Shown one piece after another: positions 7,053 through 16,585 of a DNA stretch of 64,000 bases. The notes below the pieces were generated by a model. It saw only the letters and a program-made list of their open reading frames with translations, ran no database searches and was not told the origin of the DNA. This DNA is from Anaeramoeba ignava BMAN. Taxonomy: Eukaryota > Protista > Anaeramoebae. A program made the translations under genes and the position numbers. Every line of letters starts with the position of its first letter. Positions within the stretch are counted from its first letter, which is position 1. Location: NCBI GenBank assembly GCA_028826165.1, contig JAPDFW010000114.1, positions 496,001 through 560,000 of the forward strand, written 5' to 3'.

Positions 7053-9782
7053 ATGTCTTCACAAATATGGCAAATTATTAAAGAAAATAACTTTTCTAAA
7101 ATTCGAAAAAAAATCAAAAAATCCGAATTAGAAAAAACTAACACAAGTGGAGAAACATTATTACATTATGCATGCATAACGAATCAGAATCCACAAGTAA
7201 TACAATATCTAATAAAACAAGGAATAGACGTTAATGCGAAGCAAATTTTCAATCAAACACCATTGCATTACGTTTGCATGAAAGACACGAAAGTGAATGC
7301 GATGAAAACATTGATTGAAAATAAAGCGGATTTAAATTTTCAAGATAATTTCGGACGAACTGCTTTGCACTTTCTTTTTGCAAGAAGACAGCCAATAGAG
7401 TGTATAGAGCTCTTGATATCAAGCAATGCAGACTTGAATCTCCTCGATAAGCGCGGGCGGTCTTTAATTCATATGGCCTGCAAATCTGAGTTTTATTCAA
7501 AATTAATTCCGCAATTAGTGACTGAACAAAATATTAACTCAAAAGATATCGACAAATGCACACCATTACATTATGTGTCCAGCTCCACAACAACCTGGAA
7601 TCTCATCCCTGTTCTTATTAACAAGGGCGCCGATATCTCCGCTCTTAATACTGATGAAAAAACTCCTCTTCATCTTGCTGTCACAATTTATTTCACTCAA
7701 GTTGATGTCCCGAATTTAAAATTTCTCATTTCTAAAGACAATTTGGTTCTTCTTGACAAAGATAAAAATACTCCTCTTCATTGCGCCATTCTCAATCAGC
7801 ATATCCTTCAGGATATTTCCGTTATTAAACTTCTGATTTCCAAAAAAAACATCAATATTCAAAACAAAAAACTTGAAACTCCTCTTCATTTACTTTGCCA
7901 AAAAATCAATGACAAACACGAGGAATTTCTCGCGCTTTTTCTTCGTAAAAATGCAGATATTACATTGCAAAATTTAGCGAGAATTTTGCCGTTTCATTTG
8001 ATGTTAAAATCGGGAATTCCTGTCAAAATGCTTGAGCAATTATATACAGATAAAGCACCACTTAATGAGTATTTATTCGGGAATCTAACACCATTTCTTC
8101 GCGCCTTGGAACAACACATGGACATATCCGTGATCAAATTTCTCGTCAGTAAAGGCGCCGATCCAAAAATACTTACCAAAACTGGGGACACATCTTTACA
8201 TTTAGTTTTAAAAAAAGTTCCTGATCCACAAATTGTCAAATTTCTCATTGATTGCGGTGTTGATCCCTCACAAAAAAACTCAGCTTCTGATTTACCTCTT
8301 CACTTAGCATGCAAACATTCAGATATGCCTATTGATATTCTTAAGCTTTTAATCACAAAAGACATCGACATCAACGCGAAATCATCGACTTTTGAAACAC
8401 CGCTTCATTTAATATCGAAATTCAATCACGATCCAAAAATCCTTCACTATTTGATTTCTCAAGGTGCTGACATAAACGCACTTGATTCTTCGTCTAAAAC
8501 ACCACTTTATTATGCCTGCACTGTTTATAATTTAACCGACTCAGCAATAACAAAAATTCAAACACTTCTTTTACTTGGAGCAGATCCAGATCTGAAATAC
8601 AAATCTGAGCAAACTCTTCTTCATATCACCTGCTCATCCAATCTTGACGATGCTGCTCAACTCCTCCTTAAAAATTACGCAGAAATTTCTCCTGTTGATT
8701 CAAATGGTGTTTTTCCTTATCAACTTATTACTCAAATCACAAAACGCCAAGAATTTCTTGGTCTTTTTATTTCTTATGGTTTGAATAATGAACATCTTAA
8801 TCAATTCGCTAGATCTGAACAGGAGAAGAAATTTGTTCGTAATTTCCAATCTCTTTGTATGGATTGGTTTCATTTCTTCGAAAATCAAGAATTTACTGAT
8901 TGTTCTATTTCTTGTGTTGATGGTGTTGTTAATGTGAATTCTTTCATTTTGAAAATGAGATTGAATGATGTTATTGAAAAGAAGATTGATATTTTTTCAG
9001 AAGATGATTTAGATGAAAATTTAAAAGATGATTTAAAAGAAAATTTAAAAGAAAATTTAAAAGAAAATTTAAAAGAAAATTTAAAAGAAAATTTAAATGA
9101 AAATTCAAATGAAAATCAAATTGAAAATTTAAATGAAAATCAAATTGAAAAAGAAAATCAAATTGAAATTGAAAAAGAAAATAAAAATGAAAGAGTTCAA
9201 TTTAATAGGAAAATCCAAAATCAAGAGATATTCTCATTTCCTGGCGAAGACCAAAATACACAAAAAAACATTTACCATCTCAAAGAAGTTTGCAGAAATT
9301 TAACAAAAAAAGAAGTTGAAGCATTTTTTGCATTTCTTTATTCAGGATTAATTTTCAAATACGAAGACGAAAAAACAATAAAAAACATTTCAGATTCACT
9401 TGGATTTCATAAAAAATGGAACAGAGTTAAAAGAGGAAGAAAAGGATTGCTTGGCGATCTTCAACGTATTTATCAAGATCGATCTACAGGTGATTTTACA
9501 ATTTTAGTTAATTCTCAAGAAGTCAAAATTCACAAAGCAGTTTTAATTGCAAGAAGCGATTTATATCGAGGAATGTTTTTAACAGTCAAGGATGATTCTA
9601 ATTTTGTTAATGATTACAGTGGAAAATCTCTTGAAACTTTGAAAACTTTGATTGAATTTTTATATATTGATTTTTTGGATAATTCAATATCAAAAGAAAT
9701 TAAACAAGAATTAGCTGATGCTCAAGATTATTATCAATTAAGTACTGATTCTTTTATAGAATGGAAGTTATGGTTGATTTAA
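7053..9782 (+). CDS. Ankyrin-repeat protein (~15 repeats) with tandem C-terminal BTB/POZ domains, 909 aa
   Basis: Repeated G.TPLH.A motifs (GETLLHYAC, QTPLHYVC, GRTALH, ETPLHL). BTB motifs EFTDCSI and STGDFTILVNSQEVKIHKAVLIARSDLYRGMF..LIEFLYID. Confidence 0.9.
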   Translation: MSSQIWQIIKENNFSKIRKKIKKSELEKTNTSGETLLHYACITNQNPQVIQYLIKQGIDVNAKQIFNQTPLHYVCMKDTKVNAMKTLIENKADLNFQDNFGRTALHFLFARRQPIECIELLISSNADLNLLDKRGRSLIHMACKSEFYSKLIPQLVTEQNINSKDIDKCTPLHYVSSSTTTWNLIPVLINKGADISALNTDEKTPLHLAVTIYFTQVDVPNLKFLISKDNLVLLDKDKNTPLHCAILNQHILQDISVIKLLISKKNINIQNKKLETPLHLLCQKINDKHEEFLALFLRKNADITLQNLARILPFHLMLKSGIPVKMLEQLYTDKAPLNEYLFGNLTPFLRALEQHMDISVIKFLVSKGADPKILTKTGDTSLHLVLKKVPDPQIVKFLIDCGVDPSQKNSASDLPLHLACKHSDMPIDILKLLITKDIDINAKSSTFETPLHLISKFNHDPKILHYLISQGADINALDSSSKTPLYYACTVYNLTDSAITKIQTLLLLGADPDLKYKSEQTLLHITCSSNLDDAAQLLLKNYAEISPVDSNGVFPYQLITQITKRQEFLGLFISYGLNNEHLNQFARSEQEKKFVRNFQSLCMDWFHFFENQEFTDCSISCVDGVVNVNSFILKMRLNDVIEKKIDIFSEDDLDENLKDDLKENLKENLKENLKENLKENLNENSNENQIENLNENQIEKENQIEIEKENKNERVQFNRKIQNQEIFSFPGEDQNTQKNIYHLKEVCRNLTKKEVEAFFAFLYSGLIFKYEDEKTIKNISDSLGFHKKWNRVKRGRKGLLGDLQRIYQDRSTGDFTILVNSQEVKIHKAVLIARSDLYRGMFLTVKDDSNFVNDYSGKSLETLKTLIEFLYIDFLDNSISKEIKQELADAQDYYQLSTDSFIEWKLWLI

Positions 9783-9962
9783 TTTTTTTTACTTCAAAAT
9801 GAAAAAGAAATCAAATGGATATTTATTAAGAAATTCTTTTTTTTTTTCTTTGATCAAAAAACAAAACAATAAATCAAATCAAAATTATTATTTTTCTTAT
9901 TTTTTTTTTGGAATAAATTTTGATGAATACAAAAGAAAAGAAAAGAAAAGAAAATAAAAGAA

Positions 9963-12900
9963 TTAATTTAAAAAGTGGAATAGTTGTTTGTGTCTTGAAA
10001 GTTCCTTTTTGGAAAAAGCTCGATAATGACAAGAATTTACTGGACATTTAAAATGCGGTAAATTTCTCACAGAAGAAAAAGAAGATTTAATTGCTTGATA
10101 AGAAGGAATATTTTGATTTGGATTTTCAAGAGTTTCCAAATAGGTTTTGTATCTTCCTTGAAATGATAAAGAAGGAGTTGGTTGGAAAAAAAGAGAGTCA
10201 TTTTGACTGAAAAAATTATCAATCTCTCCCGTTTTTAATGGGGATTTTCTACAATGAAAACATAATGGATTTTGGCATTTTTTATAAGTTATCATGTTTG
10301 AAGTTCTTGATAAATGCTGGAAAAGAAAGGTAAATTCTTCCCGAATTTTTTGGAAACTTTTGTTGGCTTGATTTTCGGGAATGTTTGAAGAAAATAGAAA
10401 TAAACGCACAAGTTGATCATCGTTATATTCTTGTGCGCTTGGTTCTGATGAGCTCCATTCAAAAGAAAGCGAAAAACCAGGGAAGTTTTTTTTGTTGTTC
10501 AGAAATTGCTCCAAATTTTTACTGTCATCATCATCATCTTGATTTTGGAAATTGTCTTGGAAATTATGAACAAAATTCTCTTGTAGATAATTTTGGTTGT
10601 GTAAGTTATCTTGGAAATTATTTGCGAAGTTATCTTGGAAATTATTTGCAAAATTGTCTTGGAAATTATTTACAAAGTTATTGTGTAAATCATCATTCAA
10701 ATTCTGTTCTTGCAATTTTTGATGTTCTCCTTGCAAATGTCTTTCCAGTTCTTGGTTTGTTTCTAATTCTAAGAGTGATTTGTTCTGGTTCATGATTGGT
10801 GGACTAATTGGAGAAGATGGAAAAGATTTCGGACAAAATTCAACATTTTGCAATTTTTCTCTCAATAAATTTTCAATAAATAAAACTGGAGAAGGAACAA
10901 TTTTCTGAGCAAAAAAATTCCTTTCGTTTTGGCGTGATTTGCTTACAAAATTGCATCCAATTCGTGTTGTTGAAGAATCGGGTCCATAAGAAGCAACATT
11001 CAAAACATCCAAATCAAGATCTCTCCAAAGACGACCATAATAGAGCATTGCGAATAAAGAATTCGGATCAAGATCTGCATTTCCAGAATCAACAATAAAG
11101 GTATAAACTGACTTCTTGTTTTTGCTCTTTAAAATTTTGATTGTGTCGTTGATGTGAGTTTGGGCGGAAATTGAATCTAGATGAGTGTATCTCCCGAAAA
11201 GAAAAACTTCCGAAATATTTTGTGGTTTGAAATGCTTTCTTTTCAATGAATCAAGACAAAGCTCTGTCTGGGTTTGCTGCGAAGACAAGAAAACGGCTCC
11301 AGTGAAACAAATCTGCTCTTGTGGAAATGGGTCTTGTTTGTGTTCGTCATTTGAATTGAAATAATTTTCAAGACCAAATTGTGGATCAAATGGAGAAGTT
11401 TTCCCGCAATAAAGAAGCGGGATTTGTGTCAGAAACACAAGCTCTGCAGAATCATGGAAATGCGATGTAAATTCGAGTAAATATTGCACTTGTGTGTGAT
11501 TGTATGTGAAATTTCTGTGAATATTAATATTCCCATTTGCTTCAATTAAGCTCAAATATTCATTGGCATCCAACTTGTCAAGAAAAGTTTCCAAAACATA
11601 TTTTGGGTCAGTGTGATAATCGTTGATTTTATACATTGAAGACTGTTTGTATGTTTGTGAGTCTTGAGGATTTGTTCTTGGTCGTTGATAATCCTCGACA
11701 CTCTGCTGATCTTGGAATATGCTGGTTTCTTCTCGATTCAAATTTGTGAAAAGATTTCTGAATTGAAAATCATCTTCCATTTCTTCATGTAAAACATCCG
11801 TATTTTCGGAGTTAAAAATATGGCTTTCTTTGGCTCCAAAATCCAAACTCGACACAAAACTATCAGTTTCATCTTCAGGTAAGTCTTCACGATGAGGGAG
11901 CTTTGCATCTTTAAAAATGACATTGTAAATTCCGCGAAGATGAAAAGGTTGCTTTTCGATCCAAGGTTTTCTTTGGATTCGAAGATTCTTTGAAGGGATA
12001 ATATCAATAATTCGTGCGCCAAATAACTCCAGATATCCTGGAGATTTTTGTGAATTTTGTTCTTTATTTTCGGGATTTGAAATCTTATTGATAATATAAT
12101 CCTGTGTGCTAATTGAATCACTTAAATGCAAAATTTCATGCAGTAGTTGTTCGTTGAGTTGATGAATATTGAAAAAGAGTATTCTGTCGTTTTTTTTCAC
12201 TTCAAAAACACAGCATTGTCTCATTATTTGCAATTCGACTGAGCTCATAAGATATTTGGGCACCTTGAATTTTTCCATTATGTACGATAAGCTCAAAGCT
12301 TCCAAATTTTTCATTTCACTTACAAATTGACACATTTTCTGGTTTGAAAGAGGTGTAAGATCCACTCCTGTTGATATTGAGTGAATAATTCTTGATTCCA
12401 CAAAATCCCAATAATTGGAATTTAATCCAGAGATTTTGATATTTGATACTATTTTTGGAATTAATTCTGGAATTAAATTTGTTTGTTTTGGCTCAATAGC
12501 AATTGTATTTTCTCCATGAAACTTGTTTGTGCGTAAATCAAACAGTGAATTTTGTGAGTGTGTTTCTCGATGAATAGTGAATGATTCAGTTTCCGGAATT
12601 TGAGCAGAAAATGGTGACTCAAATGAGTGAAGATTATCGAGATGACTAATTGGTTGTTGTGTTTGTTCTACAACCTCTTTGAAATGGTTGGTTTGTTTAT
12701 TAAATTCATTAATCGGGAAGATTTCTGGGAATTCTAAGTGATTTTCCAAAGAGAATAATTTTTCATTATGATTATTTGGGAAAAACTTTAGAGATGTTGA
12801 AATTTCTAATGGATTGTTTTCTTCTAGAATTTGATTTTGGATTTGATTTTGGATTTGATTTTGGATTTGATTTTTAATTTGATTTTGATTTTCGTTTTGA

Positions 12901-14234
12901 TTTTCTTTTTGAATATTTTGATTTTGAATATTTTGATTTTGAATATTTTGAATACTTTGAATATCGTTTTGAATATTTTGAATATTTTGAATACTTTCAT
13001 TTTGATTTTGAATAAGATTGTTCAAATGATCAAATTTTTCAATTAAATCTTTTGGTTTTTCAGCAAATATAGAACTTTCAAGATTTTCTAAATTTGAGGT
13101 AATTGTGAATTGGTTCATAATGGAAAGATCTTCATTCATTAGTTCATTTATTGTTGTTGATTGATTATTTTCAAATCCAATATCAACAGGAACTGTAACA
13201 GTTTTTGGATCATTACTATTTTGGGATTCTTCATTGTTTTCAGATTCTTGAATTTCTTGAATATCTTCTATAATACGTATTTTGTGATGAAGTCGTTTTG
13301 ATTCATCGATATGTTGTGTTGTTTTTTTACGATGTAAACTTTTCAAGCTTCTTTTTCTTTCATTTTTCTTTTGAATTGTATTTTTCTGGATATTTTTACG
13401 ACTTCTAGTATTTTTTTTGGCAGATTTTTCTTGATGAATAGCCGCTCTTTGTCGGTAAATTCTTTTACGAAGTCTTTTTTTGGCAGCTAAGATAGTATCA
13501 ATAAATTCTTTCATTGCTTTTGTAGCCTCGTGCATAAAGTTATCATAATTTTGATTTTGATTTTTTTCGATTTCATTTTTTTGAAATTGAAATTCGAATT
13601 GATTTTCAATATTTTCAATATTTTCAATATTTTCAATATGATTTTGATTTTGATTTTGATTTTGATTTTGATTTTGATTTTCTTGATTTTCTTGATTTTC
13701 TTGATTTTCTTGTTTTTCTTGATTTTCTTGATTTTCTTGATTTTCTTTTTTTTCTTGATTTTTAAATAAATTCTCAAGATAATTTTCAACAATTTTCTTT
13801 TGATTTTCAACTTGATTTAAACTTTGAGATAAAACAGTTTTACGTAAAGGAGCTCTTTTAAGATTTGATTGGTATTCATTACGCAATTTCAAAAAGCTAT
13901 GCCATTGTTCAGAAGATTGTCTAAGAGTTTCAAAAAAAGTTGAATGAGAAGCAAATTGTTGGATATTTATATTACAAGAAAAAGAAGCAAGAAATTCATT
14001 CAAAAGTGTATTTTGGTCTTTTTTTTGTGTGTTGTTTGGTTTTTCCATTTTTGGACTGTTCTTTTCTATATAATTTTTAACAAATATTGTGTCATGTTTA
14101 ACTTCATTCCATTTTTTTTGCGCTTGTTCAAAAATTTCTCCCCTTGTTCCGTTTTGATGATTTTGATAAAAGAAACAATTCACAAATGTTTCGTATAAGT
14201 TTCTTGGTTGTCGATAAATATAAGTTTTTGACAT
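9963..14234 (-). CDS. 1423-aa protein with a degenerate Zator/TP36-like transposase domain, N-terminal helical domain and C-terminal Cys cluster plus C2H2 zinc finger; probably a domesticated transposase
   Basis: Intact intronless ORF starting at ATG 14234 (MSKTYIY). It carries SISAQTHIND..YTFIVDSGNADLDPNS..YYGRLWRDLDLDVLNVASYGPDSS, KCQNPLCFHC, FFQPTPS..GRYKTYLE and CPVNSC..ELSRHKQLFH, which resemble Zator-type transposase blocks as I recall them. Confidence 0.6.
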   Translation of the reverse strand: MSKTYIYRQPRNLYETFVNCFFYQNHQNGTRGEIFEQAQKKWNEVKHDTIFVKNYIEKNSPKMEKPNNTQKKDQNTLLNEFLASFSCNINIQQFASHSTFFETLRQSSEQWHSFLKLRNEYQSNLKRAPLRKTVLSQSLNQVENQKKIVENYLENLFKNQEKKENQENQENQEKQENQENQENQENQNQNQNQNQNQNHIENIENIENIENQFEFQFQKNEIEKNQNQNYDNFMHEATKAMKEFIDTILAAKKRLRKRIYRQRAAIHQEKSAKKNTRSRKNIQKNTIQKKNERKRSLKSLHRKKTTQHIDESKRLHHKIRIIEDIQEIQESENNEESQNSNDPKTVTVPVDIGFENNQSTTINELMNEDLSIMNQFTITSNLENLESSIFAEKPKDLIEKFDHLNNLIQNQNESIQNIQNIQNDIQSIQNIQNQNIQNQNIQKENQNENQNQIKNQIQNQIQNQIQNQILEENNPLEISTSLKFFPNNHNEKLFSLENHLEFPEIFPINEFNKQTNHFKEVVEQTQQPISHLDNLHSFESPFSAQIPETESFTIHRETHSQNSLFDLRTNKFHGENTIAIEPKQTNLIPELIPKIVSNIKISGLNSNYWDFVESRIIHSISTGVDLTPLSNQKMCQFVSEMKNLEALSLSYIMEKFKVPKYLMSSVELQIMRQCCVFEVKKNDRILFFNIHQLNEQLLHEILHLSDSISTQDYIINKISNPENKEQNSQKSPGYLELFGARIIDIIPSKNLRIQRKPWIEKQPFHLRGIYNVIFKDAKLPHREDLPEDETDSFVSSLDFGAKESHIFNSENTDVLHEEMEDDFQFRNLFTNLNREETSIFQDQQSVEDYQRPRTNPQDSQTYKQSSMYKINDYHTDPKYVLETFLDKLDANEYLSLIEANGNINIHRNFTYNHTQVQYLLEFTSHFHDSAELVFLTQIPLLYCGKTSPFDPQFGLENYFNSNDEHKQDPFPQEQICFTGAVFLSSQQTQTELCLDSLKRKHFKPQNISEVFLFGRYTHLDSISAQTHINDTIKILKSKNKKSVYTFIVDSGNADLDPNSLFAMLYYGRLWRDLDLDVLNVASYGPDSSTTRIGCNFVSKSRQNERNFFAQKIVPSPVLFIENLLREKLQNVEFCPKSFPSSPISPPIMNQNKSLLELETNQELERHLQGEHQKLQEQNLNDDLHNNFVNNFQDNFANNFQDNFANNFQDNLHNQNYLQENFVHNFQDNFQNQDDDDDSKNLEQFLNNKKNFPGFSLSFEWSSSEPSAQEYNDDQLVRLFLFSSNIPENQANKSFQKIREEFTFLFQHLSRTSNMITYKKCQNPLCFHCRKSPLKTGEIDNFFSQNDSLFFQPTPSLSFQGRYKTYLETLENPNQNIPSYQAIKSSFSSVRNLPHFKCPVNSCHYRAFSKKELSRHKQLFHFLN

Positions 14235-14354
14235 TTTAAGTTTTAAAAACAAACTAAAAAAAAAATGAAAAAAAAAAATGAAAAAAAAATGAAAAAAAAT
14301 TTTTTTTAATGTTGTGTTTTTTTTCTTTTTTTTTTTTAACATTTCAAAAAAAAA

Positions 14355-14800
14355 AGAATAAAAATCAAAATCAAAAAACAAAAACAAATTCAAATTCAAA
14401 ATCATTAAAATCATTAAATTCAAAATCAAATTCAAATTCTAGAATTAAAATCAAAATCAAAATCAAATTCAAAATCAAAATCAAAATCAAATTCAAAATC
14501 AAAATCAAATTCAAAATCAAAATCAAAATCAAAATAAAAATTAAAATCAAAATTAAAATTAAAATCAAAATCAAAATCAAAATCAAAATCAAAATCAAAA
14601 TCAAAATTAAAATCAAAATCAAAATCAAAATCAAAATCAAATTCAAAATCAAAACCAAAATCAAAATCAAAATCAAAATCAAAATTAAAATCAAAATTAA
14701 AATCAAAATCAAAATCAAAATCAAAATCAAAATCAAAATCAAAATCAAAATTAAAATTCTGTTTATTTACAAATAAGATCAAAATCAAAATTAAAAATTA
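14355..14800. repeat. (AAAATC)n microsatellite between the divergent transposase-like and MOB1 genes
   Basis: Hexamer array visible directly. Confidence 0.9.
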
Positions 14801-14811
14801 AAAAATTAAAA

Positions 14812-14847
14812 TTCATTTTTTTTTTCATTTTTTTTCATTTTTTTTTT
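14812..14847 (+). promoter_or_regulatory. Tandem TTCATTTT initiator-like elements upstream of MOB1
   Basis: Three copies 15-50 nt before ATG 14860. Reverse-strand copies at 14261-14298 serve the divergent gene. Confidence 0.55.
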
Positions 14848-14859
14848 AATATTTAAATT

Positions 14860-16585
14860 ATGAGTTTTTTTAGCAAAACAAAAACTTTTAAACCTCAAAG
14901 AAAAATTAAAGAAGGAACAAAACAATATGAATTAAAGAAATTTGCAGATGCAACTCTTGGAAGTGGAAATTTAAAATTAGCAGTTATGCTTCCAGAAGGA
15001 GAAGATTTACATGAATGGTTAGCAGTTAATAGTAATTTATTATTTCTCAATTTTTTTTTAATATTCTTTTAAATTAAAATTAAAATTATAATTAAAATTT
15101 TTTGTTGGAATTTTGTTGGAATTTAATTTTGATTTAAAATTAAAATTGAAATTCATTTATAAAATTATAATTAAAATTAAAATTAAAATTAAAATTAAAA
15201 TTACAATTAAAATTAAAATTAAAATTATAATTAAAATTAAAATTATATTTAAAATTAAAATTAAAATTAAAATTAAAATTATAATTAAAATTAAAATTTA
15301 AATTAAAATTAAAATTAAAATTAAAATTAAAATTATAATTAAAATTAAAATTATAATTATAATTAAAATTAAAATTAAAATTGAAATTCATTTATAAAAT
15401 TAAAATTATAATTATATTTATTATTAAAATTATAATTAAAATTATAATTAAAATTAAAATTAAAATTAAAATTAAAATTATAATTAAAATTATAATTAAA
15501 ATTCATTTATAAAATTATAATTAAAATTAAAAATTCAAATTATTATTAAAAATTATAATTAAAATTAAAATTGAAATTCATTTATAAAATTAAAATTATA
15601 ATTATATTTATTATTAAAATTAAAATTAAAATTAAAATTAAAATTAAAATTAAAATTAAAATTAAAATTAAAATTAAAATTAAAATTAAAATTCAAATTA
15701 AAATTAAAATTAAAATTAAAATTAAAATTAAAATTAAAATTAAAATTAAAATTAAAATTAAAATTAAAATTTAAATTATATTTAAAATTAAAATTAAAAT
15801 TAAAATTAAAATTAAAAAATTAAAATTAAAATTAAAATTAAAATTAAAATTAAAATTAAAATTAAAATTTAAATTATATTTAAAATTAAAATTACAAATA
15901 ATTAGCTGTCGATTTTTTTAATCAAATTAATATGCTCTATGGAACTATTACTGAATATTGTACAGAACAATCATGTCCAGTAATGTCTGCAGGTCCTAAA
16001 TATGAATATCATTGGGCAGATGAACAACAAAAAAAACCACAAAAATTATCAGCACCTGATTATATTAATAGATTAATGAATTGGGTTCAAGATCTTCTTG
16101 ATAATGAAAACATTTTTCCATCTAGAATGGGTATTTCCAATTCATTCCAAATTTCATAATTAATTTTATAAATGAATTTTATAAATAAATTTTATAAATT
16201 AATTTTATAAATAAATTTTATAAATTAATTTCATAAATGAATTTTATAAATTAATTTCAATTTGTTTAGGTTATTCTTTTCCAAAAAATTTTACAACAGT
16301 TGTTAAAACAATTTTCAAAAGATTATTTCGTGTTTATGCACATATGTATCATCATCATTTCCAAGATATTACAAAACTTGGAGAAGAAGCTCATTTAAAC
16401 ACTTCTTTCAAACATTTTATGTATTTCGTTCGAGAATTCAAGTAAATAAATAAAAAGAAAAAAGAGAAAAATTATTTTTTTGGATTAAAATTTATTTCTT
16501 TTGTTTAAATAGATTAATCAAAAAAAATGAATTAGTTCCACTCAGAGAATTAATTCATAAATTACTCGATGATAAAAAGAAATAA
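14860..16585 (+). CDS. MOB1: MOB1 kinase activator, 213 aa; exons 14860-15031, 15906-16130, 16270-16441, 16513-16585
   Basis: The spliced product reads [94 protein letters not shown]. All junctions are GT-AG and frame-consistent (642 nt). Confidence 0.96.
15070..15895. repeat. (AAAATT)n satellite filling MOB1 intron 1 (intron 15032-15905)
   Basis: Hexamer array bounded by GTAATT...ATTAG. Confidence 0.9.

Follow-up and report, generated by a model that had tools for sequence, protein, structure and literature searches.

In a 64,000-nucleotide stretch of the Anaeramoeba ignava BMAN genome (contig JAPDFW010000114.1, positions 496,001 to 560,000; hereafter the window), an intronless gene on the minus strand encodes a protein of 1423 amino acids (aa), here called the window protein. 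We judge, with a probability of roughly 0.7, that this gene is a domesticated, or exapted, descendant of a Zator/TP36-type DDE transposase, a catalytically disabled host gene that belongs to a lineage-specific family. Domestication is supported by the single copy, by the lack of terminal inverted repeats (TIRs), by open frames in nine paralogs at 25 to 44% identity, and by a ratio of nonsynonymous to synonymous change (omega) of about 0.3 in relatives.

The open reading frame (ORF; positions 9963 to 14234, minus strand) runs uninterrupted for 1423 codons, plus stop, from the ATG at 14234, as a preliminary description of this DNA had stated. Its GC content, 0.27 to 0.37, is close to that of the neighbouring ankyrin/BTB gene, intergenic DNA lying at 0.05 to 0.2. 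In the 42.8-Mb A. ignava genome, the sole full-length DNA match is the gene itself, and the further 200-plus matches all fall on NQ-type low-complexity stretches. The NQ and NNFQDNFA insertions had been called host-type, and these stretches do match hundreds of loci genome-wide. No TIRs bracket the ORF within positions 8800 to 15800, where the inverted repeats are all low-complexity arrays, which agrees with the earlier account of the flanks; because there are no TIRs, the ends of an element, and with them a target-site duplication, cannot be defined. The genomic copy count likewise yielded no near-identical TIR-flanked copies. The multiple copies expected of an autonomous Zator transposon were not found, the eight other loci being 25 to 44% identical at the protein level. 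A transposase-derived coding sequence that is single copy, occupies a fixed place among host genes, and is devoid of transposon features is what is expected of a domesticated gene, and this is what we see.

Several of the searches run to place the protein gave no informative match. A Pfam scan of the whole protein gave no model at E ≤ 1, a PDB sequence scan gave no match, and an exact look-up in the protein collection found neither the window protein nor three paralog ORFs. A word-index homolog search with aa 590 to 1423 returned no scored match, probably swamped by low-complexity words, and a feature-based atlas search yielded nothing beyond generic C2H2 clusters, whose value of 0.84 does not rise above noise. 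Relatives came from an exhaustive HMMER search with aa 590 to 1423, which retrieved 177 proteins at E ≤ 1e-3, 39 of them at E ≤ 1e-10. These include Anaeramoeba flamelloides proteins of 1100 to 1480 aa, uncharacterised proteins of the animals Ptychodera flava and Anneissia japonica, and many ORFs from metagenomes and Logan contigs. An alignment (A1) was made from 61 of the 177. When its members were scanned singly, PF07592 (DDE_Tnp_ISAZ013, the TP36/ISAzo13 DDE domain) was found in 21 of the 61, with a best E value of 1.6e-7, and no other transposase family recurs among them. The A1 consensus shows the blocks ScDnknK, DHDFP, H.NDL, vD.GPDw.P, GRLWRDL.LD.L, and sYAPG.S.fNPIEh.W, in that order, continuing with KC....C.HC, P.PS...gHy.TFLE, and a C2H2 finger. 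This reproduces the Zator block order given earlier, with one amendment: the N-terminal helix block, listed there as a general Zator feature, is mostly specific to Anaeramoeba in our sample.

Zator is described as a eukaryotic superfamily derived from bacterial TP36 (PMC7386202), and among fungi it has been recorded in Rhizophagus (PMC5751038). The window protein and its 177 relatives have in common the ordered motif blocks, an RNase H-like core, an HCCC motif, and a terminal C2H2 finger. In contrast to Zator transposases, the window gene lacks TIRs and two of the three catalytic residues, is single copy, and is two to three times longer, owing to low-complexity inserts and an extra N-terminal domain. 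Transitive sequence evidence, together with the predicted structure described below, thus supports descent from a Zator/TP36-type transposase, as had been proposed. Around an apparently intact relative, at the P0006 locus, a search turned up no convincing TIR, and hence none of the relatives is shown to be a genuine mobile element.

The structural comparison that had been suggested was made with an AlphaFold2 model of aa 870 to 1423 built on alignment A1 (mean predicted local distance difference test [pLDDT] score, 75.6; predicted template-modeling [pTM] score, 0.76). The elements of the model run b1-b2-b3-a1-b4-a2-b5, as in RNase H-like folds. A comparison with the ESM Atlas shows that it resembles a bacterial cluster in which 100% of members carry PF07592, with a template-modeling (TM) score of 0.77 (by target) over 229 residues and a root mean square deviation of 3.0. 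It also resembles eukaryotic clusters from Rotifera and Mucoromycota, with TM scores of 0.56 to 0.67. A VIA-align comparison against PDB representatives places DDE integrase or transposase structures in all 27 best rows. The top ten, with Z scores of 8.0 to 8.6, include the integrases of avian sarcoma virus (ASV), prototype foamy virus (PFV), and human immunodeficiency virus (HIV) along with Mos1, Metnase, and IstA, while Hermes, Sleeping Beauty, and Tn5 occupy lower rows. Foldseek matches of the core to the PDB are weak (best E, 0.013), and all of the top ones are RNase H-like folds.

Within this fold, an intact D-D-E triad is missing from the window protein. The first and second catalytic Asp positions (D1 and D2) were read from the profile alignment, and the position of the catalytic Glu (E) in the window protein was read from a focused L-INS-i alignment. 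In the profile alignment, D1 is Asp in 33 of 34 non-Anaeramoeba relatives and E is Glu in 39 of 39, and by inspection nearly all have Asp at D2. The corresponding residues of the window protein are T936, D1049, and L1118. The model places T936 in b1, D1049 just past b4, and L1118 in the first helix turn after a low-confidence loop. The motif coordinates given earlier are accurate (FLTQIPL, aa 934 to 940, 11415 to 11435; IVDSG, aa 1047 to 1051, 11082 to 11096; SSTTRIG, aa 1087 to 1093, 10956 to 10976), and FLTQIPL as a degenerate first Asp block and IVDSG as the retained middle Asp both hold in the alignment. The loss of the Glu also stands, but SSTTRIG is not its position: that motif is the edge of an insertion, and the true site lies about 30 residues downstream, where SPVLFIENLL aligns to NPIEhaWspL after 24 inserted residues. 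The sister paralog also has an insertion at this point. Since both the first Asp and the Glu are lost, the protein most likely can neither cut nor join DNA, as judged from the alignments.

Beyond the active site, much of the transposase scaffold persists (Table 1). The middle domain gives jackhmmer E values of 1e-22 to 1e-28 to P0016, P0098, P0071, P0023, and P0013; it is common to long non-Anaeramoeba relatives and is therefore part of the ancestral transposase. YGRLW lies at aa 1066, the zinc-ligand segment KKCQNPLCFHC at aa 1318 to 1328, and the C2H2 finger spans aa 1395 to 1420. The HCCC motif formed by H1307, C1320, C1325, and C1328 is presumed to be a zinc site. The N-terminal domain is conserved in Anaeramoeba paralogs, being duplicated in some, and outside Anaeramoeba it is present just in P0128 and P0081. 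Its first 60 residues are modeled as a three-helix unit that is possibly HMG-box-like. Five HMG boxes are found among the structural matches of this unit (Z, 3.9 to 4.6; 15 to 20% identity) amid many unrelated helical matches, Foldseek gives an E value of 9.9 to 1hsm, and no Pfam or PDB profile match to an HMG box was obtained for the N terminus.

Table 1. Positions of the transposase-derived gene, its upstream motif, and its protein features in the window
Feature	Position	Strand	Basis or remark
Transposase-derived gene, intact intronless ORF, 1423 aa + stop	9963..14234	-	Single copy at DNA level
TTTCATTTT in three copies, 28-60 bp before the ATG	14262..14294	-	Motif also precedes neighbouring genes
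N-terminal helical domain, aa 1-150 (IY..PRN.YE.FVN.YF...AQK.W)	13785..14234	-	Anaeramoeba paralogs; AlphaFold2 pLDDT 85.5
Basic stretch like a nuclear localization signal (NLS), aa 245-310, 24 K/R in 66 residues	13305..13502	-	Composition
Middle conserved domain, aa 586-730	12045..12479	-	Common to long non-Anaeramoeba transposase homologs
RNase H-like (DDE transposase) core, aa 925-1130	10845..11462	-	AlphaFold2 topology, fold matches
T936 at first catalytic Asp position; ScDnknK block reads FLTQIPL	11427..11429	-	Alignment
D1049, second catalytic Asp, kept (IVDSG)	11088..11090	-	Alignment
24-aa insertion, aa 1091-1114, between sYAPG.S block and Glu-bearing helix of active relatives	10893..10964	-	Low model confidence
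L1118 at catalytic Glu position; NPIEhaW reads SPVLFIE	10881..10883	-	Focused alignment
Low-complexity insertion, aa 1150-1240, NNFQDNFA repeats, inside C-terminal region	10515..10787	-	pLDDT under 50
H-x12-C-x4-C-x2-C motif (H1307, C1320, C1325, C1328)	10251..10316	-	>=90% conserved family-wide
C-terminal C2H2 zinc finger, intact (C1397, C1402, H1415, H1420)	9975..10052	-	Sequence; C2H2 Pfam matches in homologs

One non-Anaeramoeba relative, P0128, is a 1076-aa protein on a Logan contig (L023:1665-4895, SRR23031613) that keeps the Glu and has Gly at D2. It has the N-terminal domain in common with the window protein and adjoins a gene for an AA9 lytic polysaccharide monooxygenase. P0128 is probably fungal and possibly represents an independent domestication.

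Searching the A. ignava genome with proteins and with profiles identified nine loci, namely the window gene (C104) and members on C134, C88 (at 288 and 252 kb), C35, C86, C61, C60, and C24, with an additional family fragment at C104:763k. The eight diverged paralogs (L009 to L016, in genome G000 at C134:88k, C88:288k, C88:252k, C35:32k, C86:262k, C61:25k, C60:982k, and C24:190k) are 25 to 44% identical to the window protein and mostly have open frames of 650 to 1700 aa. Those on C61 and C24 are broken up by stops or introns, and the two on C88 lie 36 kb apart. A. ignava database proteins are 97 to 99.7% identical to ORFs at the paralog loci. In public annotation, family members carry unrelated names: cyclophilin cyp63, A-type inclusion protein, heat shock protein, JmjC demethylase, and pyk3 kinase.

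The full triad is present at none of the nine A. ignava loci. Across Anaeramoeba members, Glu is found at E in 0 of 16 and Asp at D1 in 1 of 15, being kept by the C86 paralog alone, while D2 is retained by the window protein and eight other members and lost in seven. In a tree of 57 sequences (LG+G4), all 18 Anaeramoeba rows form one clade with an SH-like approximate likelihood ratio test (SH-aLRT) value of 98. The window gene falls in a subclade exclusive to A. ignava, its nearest relative being the C134 paralog at 32% identity. As judged from the searches and tree, one Anaeramoeba-specific clade holds the whole family, with about nine diverged members in A. ignava and eight or more in A. flamelloides. 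On the simplest history, a single ancestral element would have lost its Glu before the two species diverged and would then have duplicated.

Selection was estimated from pairs of family members. Two A. flamelloides genes, each compared between the two assemblies of different strains, depart from neutrality in the direction of purifying selection, with dS of 0.033, dN of 0.0117, and omega of 0.355 for P0017/P0151 (binomial P = 1.4e-4) and dS of 0.043, dN of 0.0147, and omega of 0.342 for P0019/P0152 (binomial P = 2.8e-5). The A. ignava paralog pair L010/L011 has dS of 1.33, dN of 0.38, and omega of about 0.29. Between the window gene and the C134 paralog, dS is saturated (pS, 0.74) and omega is not reliable. 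As for expression, a transcriptome-derived protein set of A. ignava includes the C86 paralog.

The upstream DNA of the window gene also looks like that of a host gene. The motif TTTCATTTT, which had been called a host-type element, occurs three times before its ATG and in a like position ahead of the ATGs at 7053, 14860, and 16835. Over the 64-kb window, there are 68 matches against 35.5 expected, an approximately two-fold enrichment, and on the coding strand the motif is concentrated in the 60 bp that precede start codons. We regard it as a candidate core promoter or initiator element in A. ignava.

These features suggest how the protein may act. The protein keeps the scaffold of the transposase in its middle domain, RNase H-like core, GRLWRDL.LD block, HCCC zinc motif, and C2H2 finger, and it has in addition the helical domain at its N terminus and the basic, NLS-like stretch. 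Expressed from a host-type promoter, it would enter the nucleus, to which the basic stretch at aa 245 to 310 may target it, and use its zinc modules and helical domains to bind DNA, serving as a DNA-binding or chromatin/transcription factor. A nuclear DNA-binding protein is the most likely role that we can assign from sequence features.

Several points weigh against domestication of a Zator transposase as we describe it. The window protein itself lies below every Pfam threshold, so that its PF07592 link is transitive through relatives, and the Zator label draws its support from that link and from the eukaryotic distribution. Warnings from the tree program flag compositional bias (N/K-rich) and long branches, so that the support for the Anaeramoeba clade may be inflated. 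Neither the tree nor inspection of one A. flamelloides locus revealed a 1:1 or syntenic ortholog in that species, and because of this, the inference of constraint on the window-gene lineage draws solely on the open frame and the retained non-catalytic motifs. The synteny comparison proposed earlier came out negative, since P0001, the best A. flamelloides match, has a COMM-domain gene beside it rather than MOB1 or the ankyrin-BTB gene. No RNA run covering the window gene turned up, the sole public run being a DNA-like set of contigs totaling 40 Mb; because it covers coding and non-coding DNA alike and is interrupted at repeats, the run is uninformative on expression. Finally, D2 is kept and a Glu (E1121) lies near the E position, which makes a residual or altered metal site conceivable.

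Among the alternatives, the gene could be an old, immobile transposon relic that decays neutrally, is still open by chance, and has no host function. The lost catalytic residues would fit, as would the missing RNA support for the window copy, the lack of a syntenic ortholog, and the condition of other copies, with in-frame stops or introns in the C61 paralog and just a fragment at C104:763k. However, 1423 open codons are unexpected in DNA of about 30% GC, where by an estimate from base composition some 8% of random codons would be stops, and the frame is open despite divergence from the paralogs of more than 1 substitution per site. GRLWRDL, HCCC, and C2H2 are conserved while the linkers between them are unalignable, omega is about 0.3 in relatives, and the host-type motif is in place upstream. 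We consider a neutral relic unlikely.

Similarly improbable in our view is that the protein represses Zator transposons, as a dead transposase competing for transposon ends. Dead transposase derivatives do repress their own elements, an example being the P-element KP repressors, and the presumed DNA-binding parts of the transposase are kept here. In contrast, neither the PF07592 Pfam model, which has no match in the A. ignava genome, nor the family profile detected an intact Zator/PF07592-type transposase in the 42.8 Mb, and the paralogs are too diverged for one common set of transposon ends. Repression becomes less likely because these genome searches revealed no catalytically intact Zator. 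The preliminary description had allowed for both a host regulator and a transposon repressor; copy number, absent TIRs, open frames, and omega in relatives support the host-protein part of that proposal, and its repressor option is weakened.

A still slimmer chance attaches to a functional nuclease or recombinase with a non-canonical site, built from D1049 and E1121 or other acidic residues and acting, for example, in programmed DNA rearrangement, as do the domesticated piggyBac proteins of ciliates. It could draw on the RNase H scaffold modeled at high confidence, on the D2 residue kept in the window protein and eight other Anaeramoeba members, and on E1121, which lies three residues past the Glu position in the same helix, at the Trp position of relatives. 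Yet D1 is occupied by Thr and the Glu position by Leu, and a low-confidence 24-aa insertion directly precedes the helix of the E position. Moreover, seven family members have lost D2 too, and for this reason catalysis is not what the family conserves. Two further candidates were rejected: an active element, given the single copy, the missing TIRs, and the loss of D1 and E, and an unrelated host gene merely carrying a C2H2 finger, given that homology spans about 500 aa and includes both the core and the C-terminal blocks.

The neighbours of the transposase-derived gene are host genes. MOB1, whose divergent arrangement had been pointed out, begins with exon 1 at 14860 on the plus strand, across about 625 bp. 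It extends over 14860 to 16160 and is interrupted by an intron about 890 bp long (approximately 15040 to 15930), nearly all of which is AT-rich low-complexity DNA with a 6-bp period and 5 to 7% GC. The divergent intergenic region (14300 to 14850) holds an array of about 400 bp of GATTTT/AATTTT hexamer repeats, at which the short-read contigs of the public run are interrupted. On the other side, the convergent gene at 7053 to 9782 (plus strand) encodes a 909-aa ankyrin-repeat protein with a BTB-like C-terminal region and an internal ENLK/ENQI low-complexity insert; its stop codon and that of the transposase-derived gene are 180 bp apart.

New regulators have arisen repeatedly from domesticated transposases, and domestication itself is already a known kind of event. 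To our knowledge, however, the known cases derive from few superfamilies, namely pogo/mariner, hAT, Mutator, piggyBac, P, Harbinger, and Transib, and mostly come from animals, plants, fungi, and ciliates. In the literature searched, no report of a host gene derived from Zator was found. The main text of the Anaeramoeba genome paper (PMC11550330) does not mention the dead-transposase family, and transposases are named there solely for the insertion sequence (IS) elements of symbionts. If our interpretation is true, transposase domestication would extend to a new superfamily, Zator, and to a deep-branching anaerobic protist lineage, and an organism whose genes are almost devoid of functional annotation would gain a set of candidate DNA-binding proteins specific to its lineage.

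Two groups of known systems offer the closest comparison. In plants, the Mutator-derived FHY3/FAR1 and MUSTANG genes are transposase-derived host multigene families that have zinc-binding DNA-binding modules and lack TIRs. Their transposase superfamily is unrelated to that of the Anaeramoeba family, and whereas the transcription-factor role of the plant proteins has been demonstrated by experiment, a regulatory role of the Anaeramoeba family is a proposal. We regard as evenly balanced the wider proposition that this is the first described Zator domestication, in which one captured transposase lost its Glu before the species split and radiated into at least 17 nuclear DNA-binding regulators, much like FHY3/FAR1. 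The second group comprises CENP-B, POGZ, JRK, TIGD, and SETMAR, host genes that arose from DDE transposases of the IS630-Tc1-mariner group and that keep DNA-binding domains, often with loss of catalytic residues. Compared with this pogo/Tc1-mariner group (pogo domestication is covered in PMC7386202), the Anaeramoeba genes differ in their source superfamily, Zator, and in their host, a free-living anaerobic protist, and they constitute a multigene family in two species rather than a single conserved ortholog.

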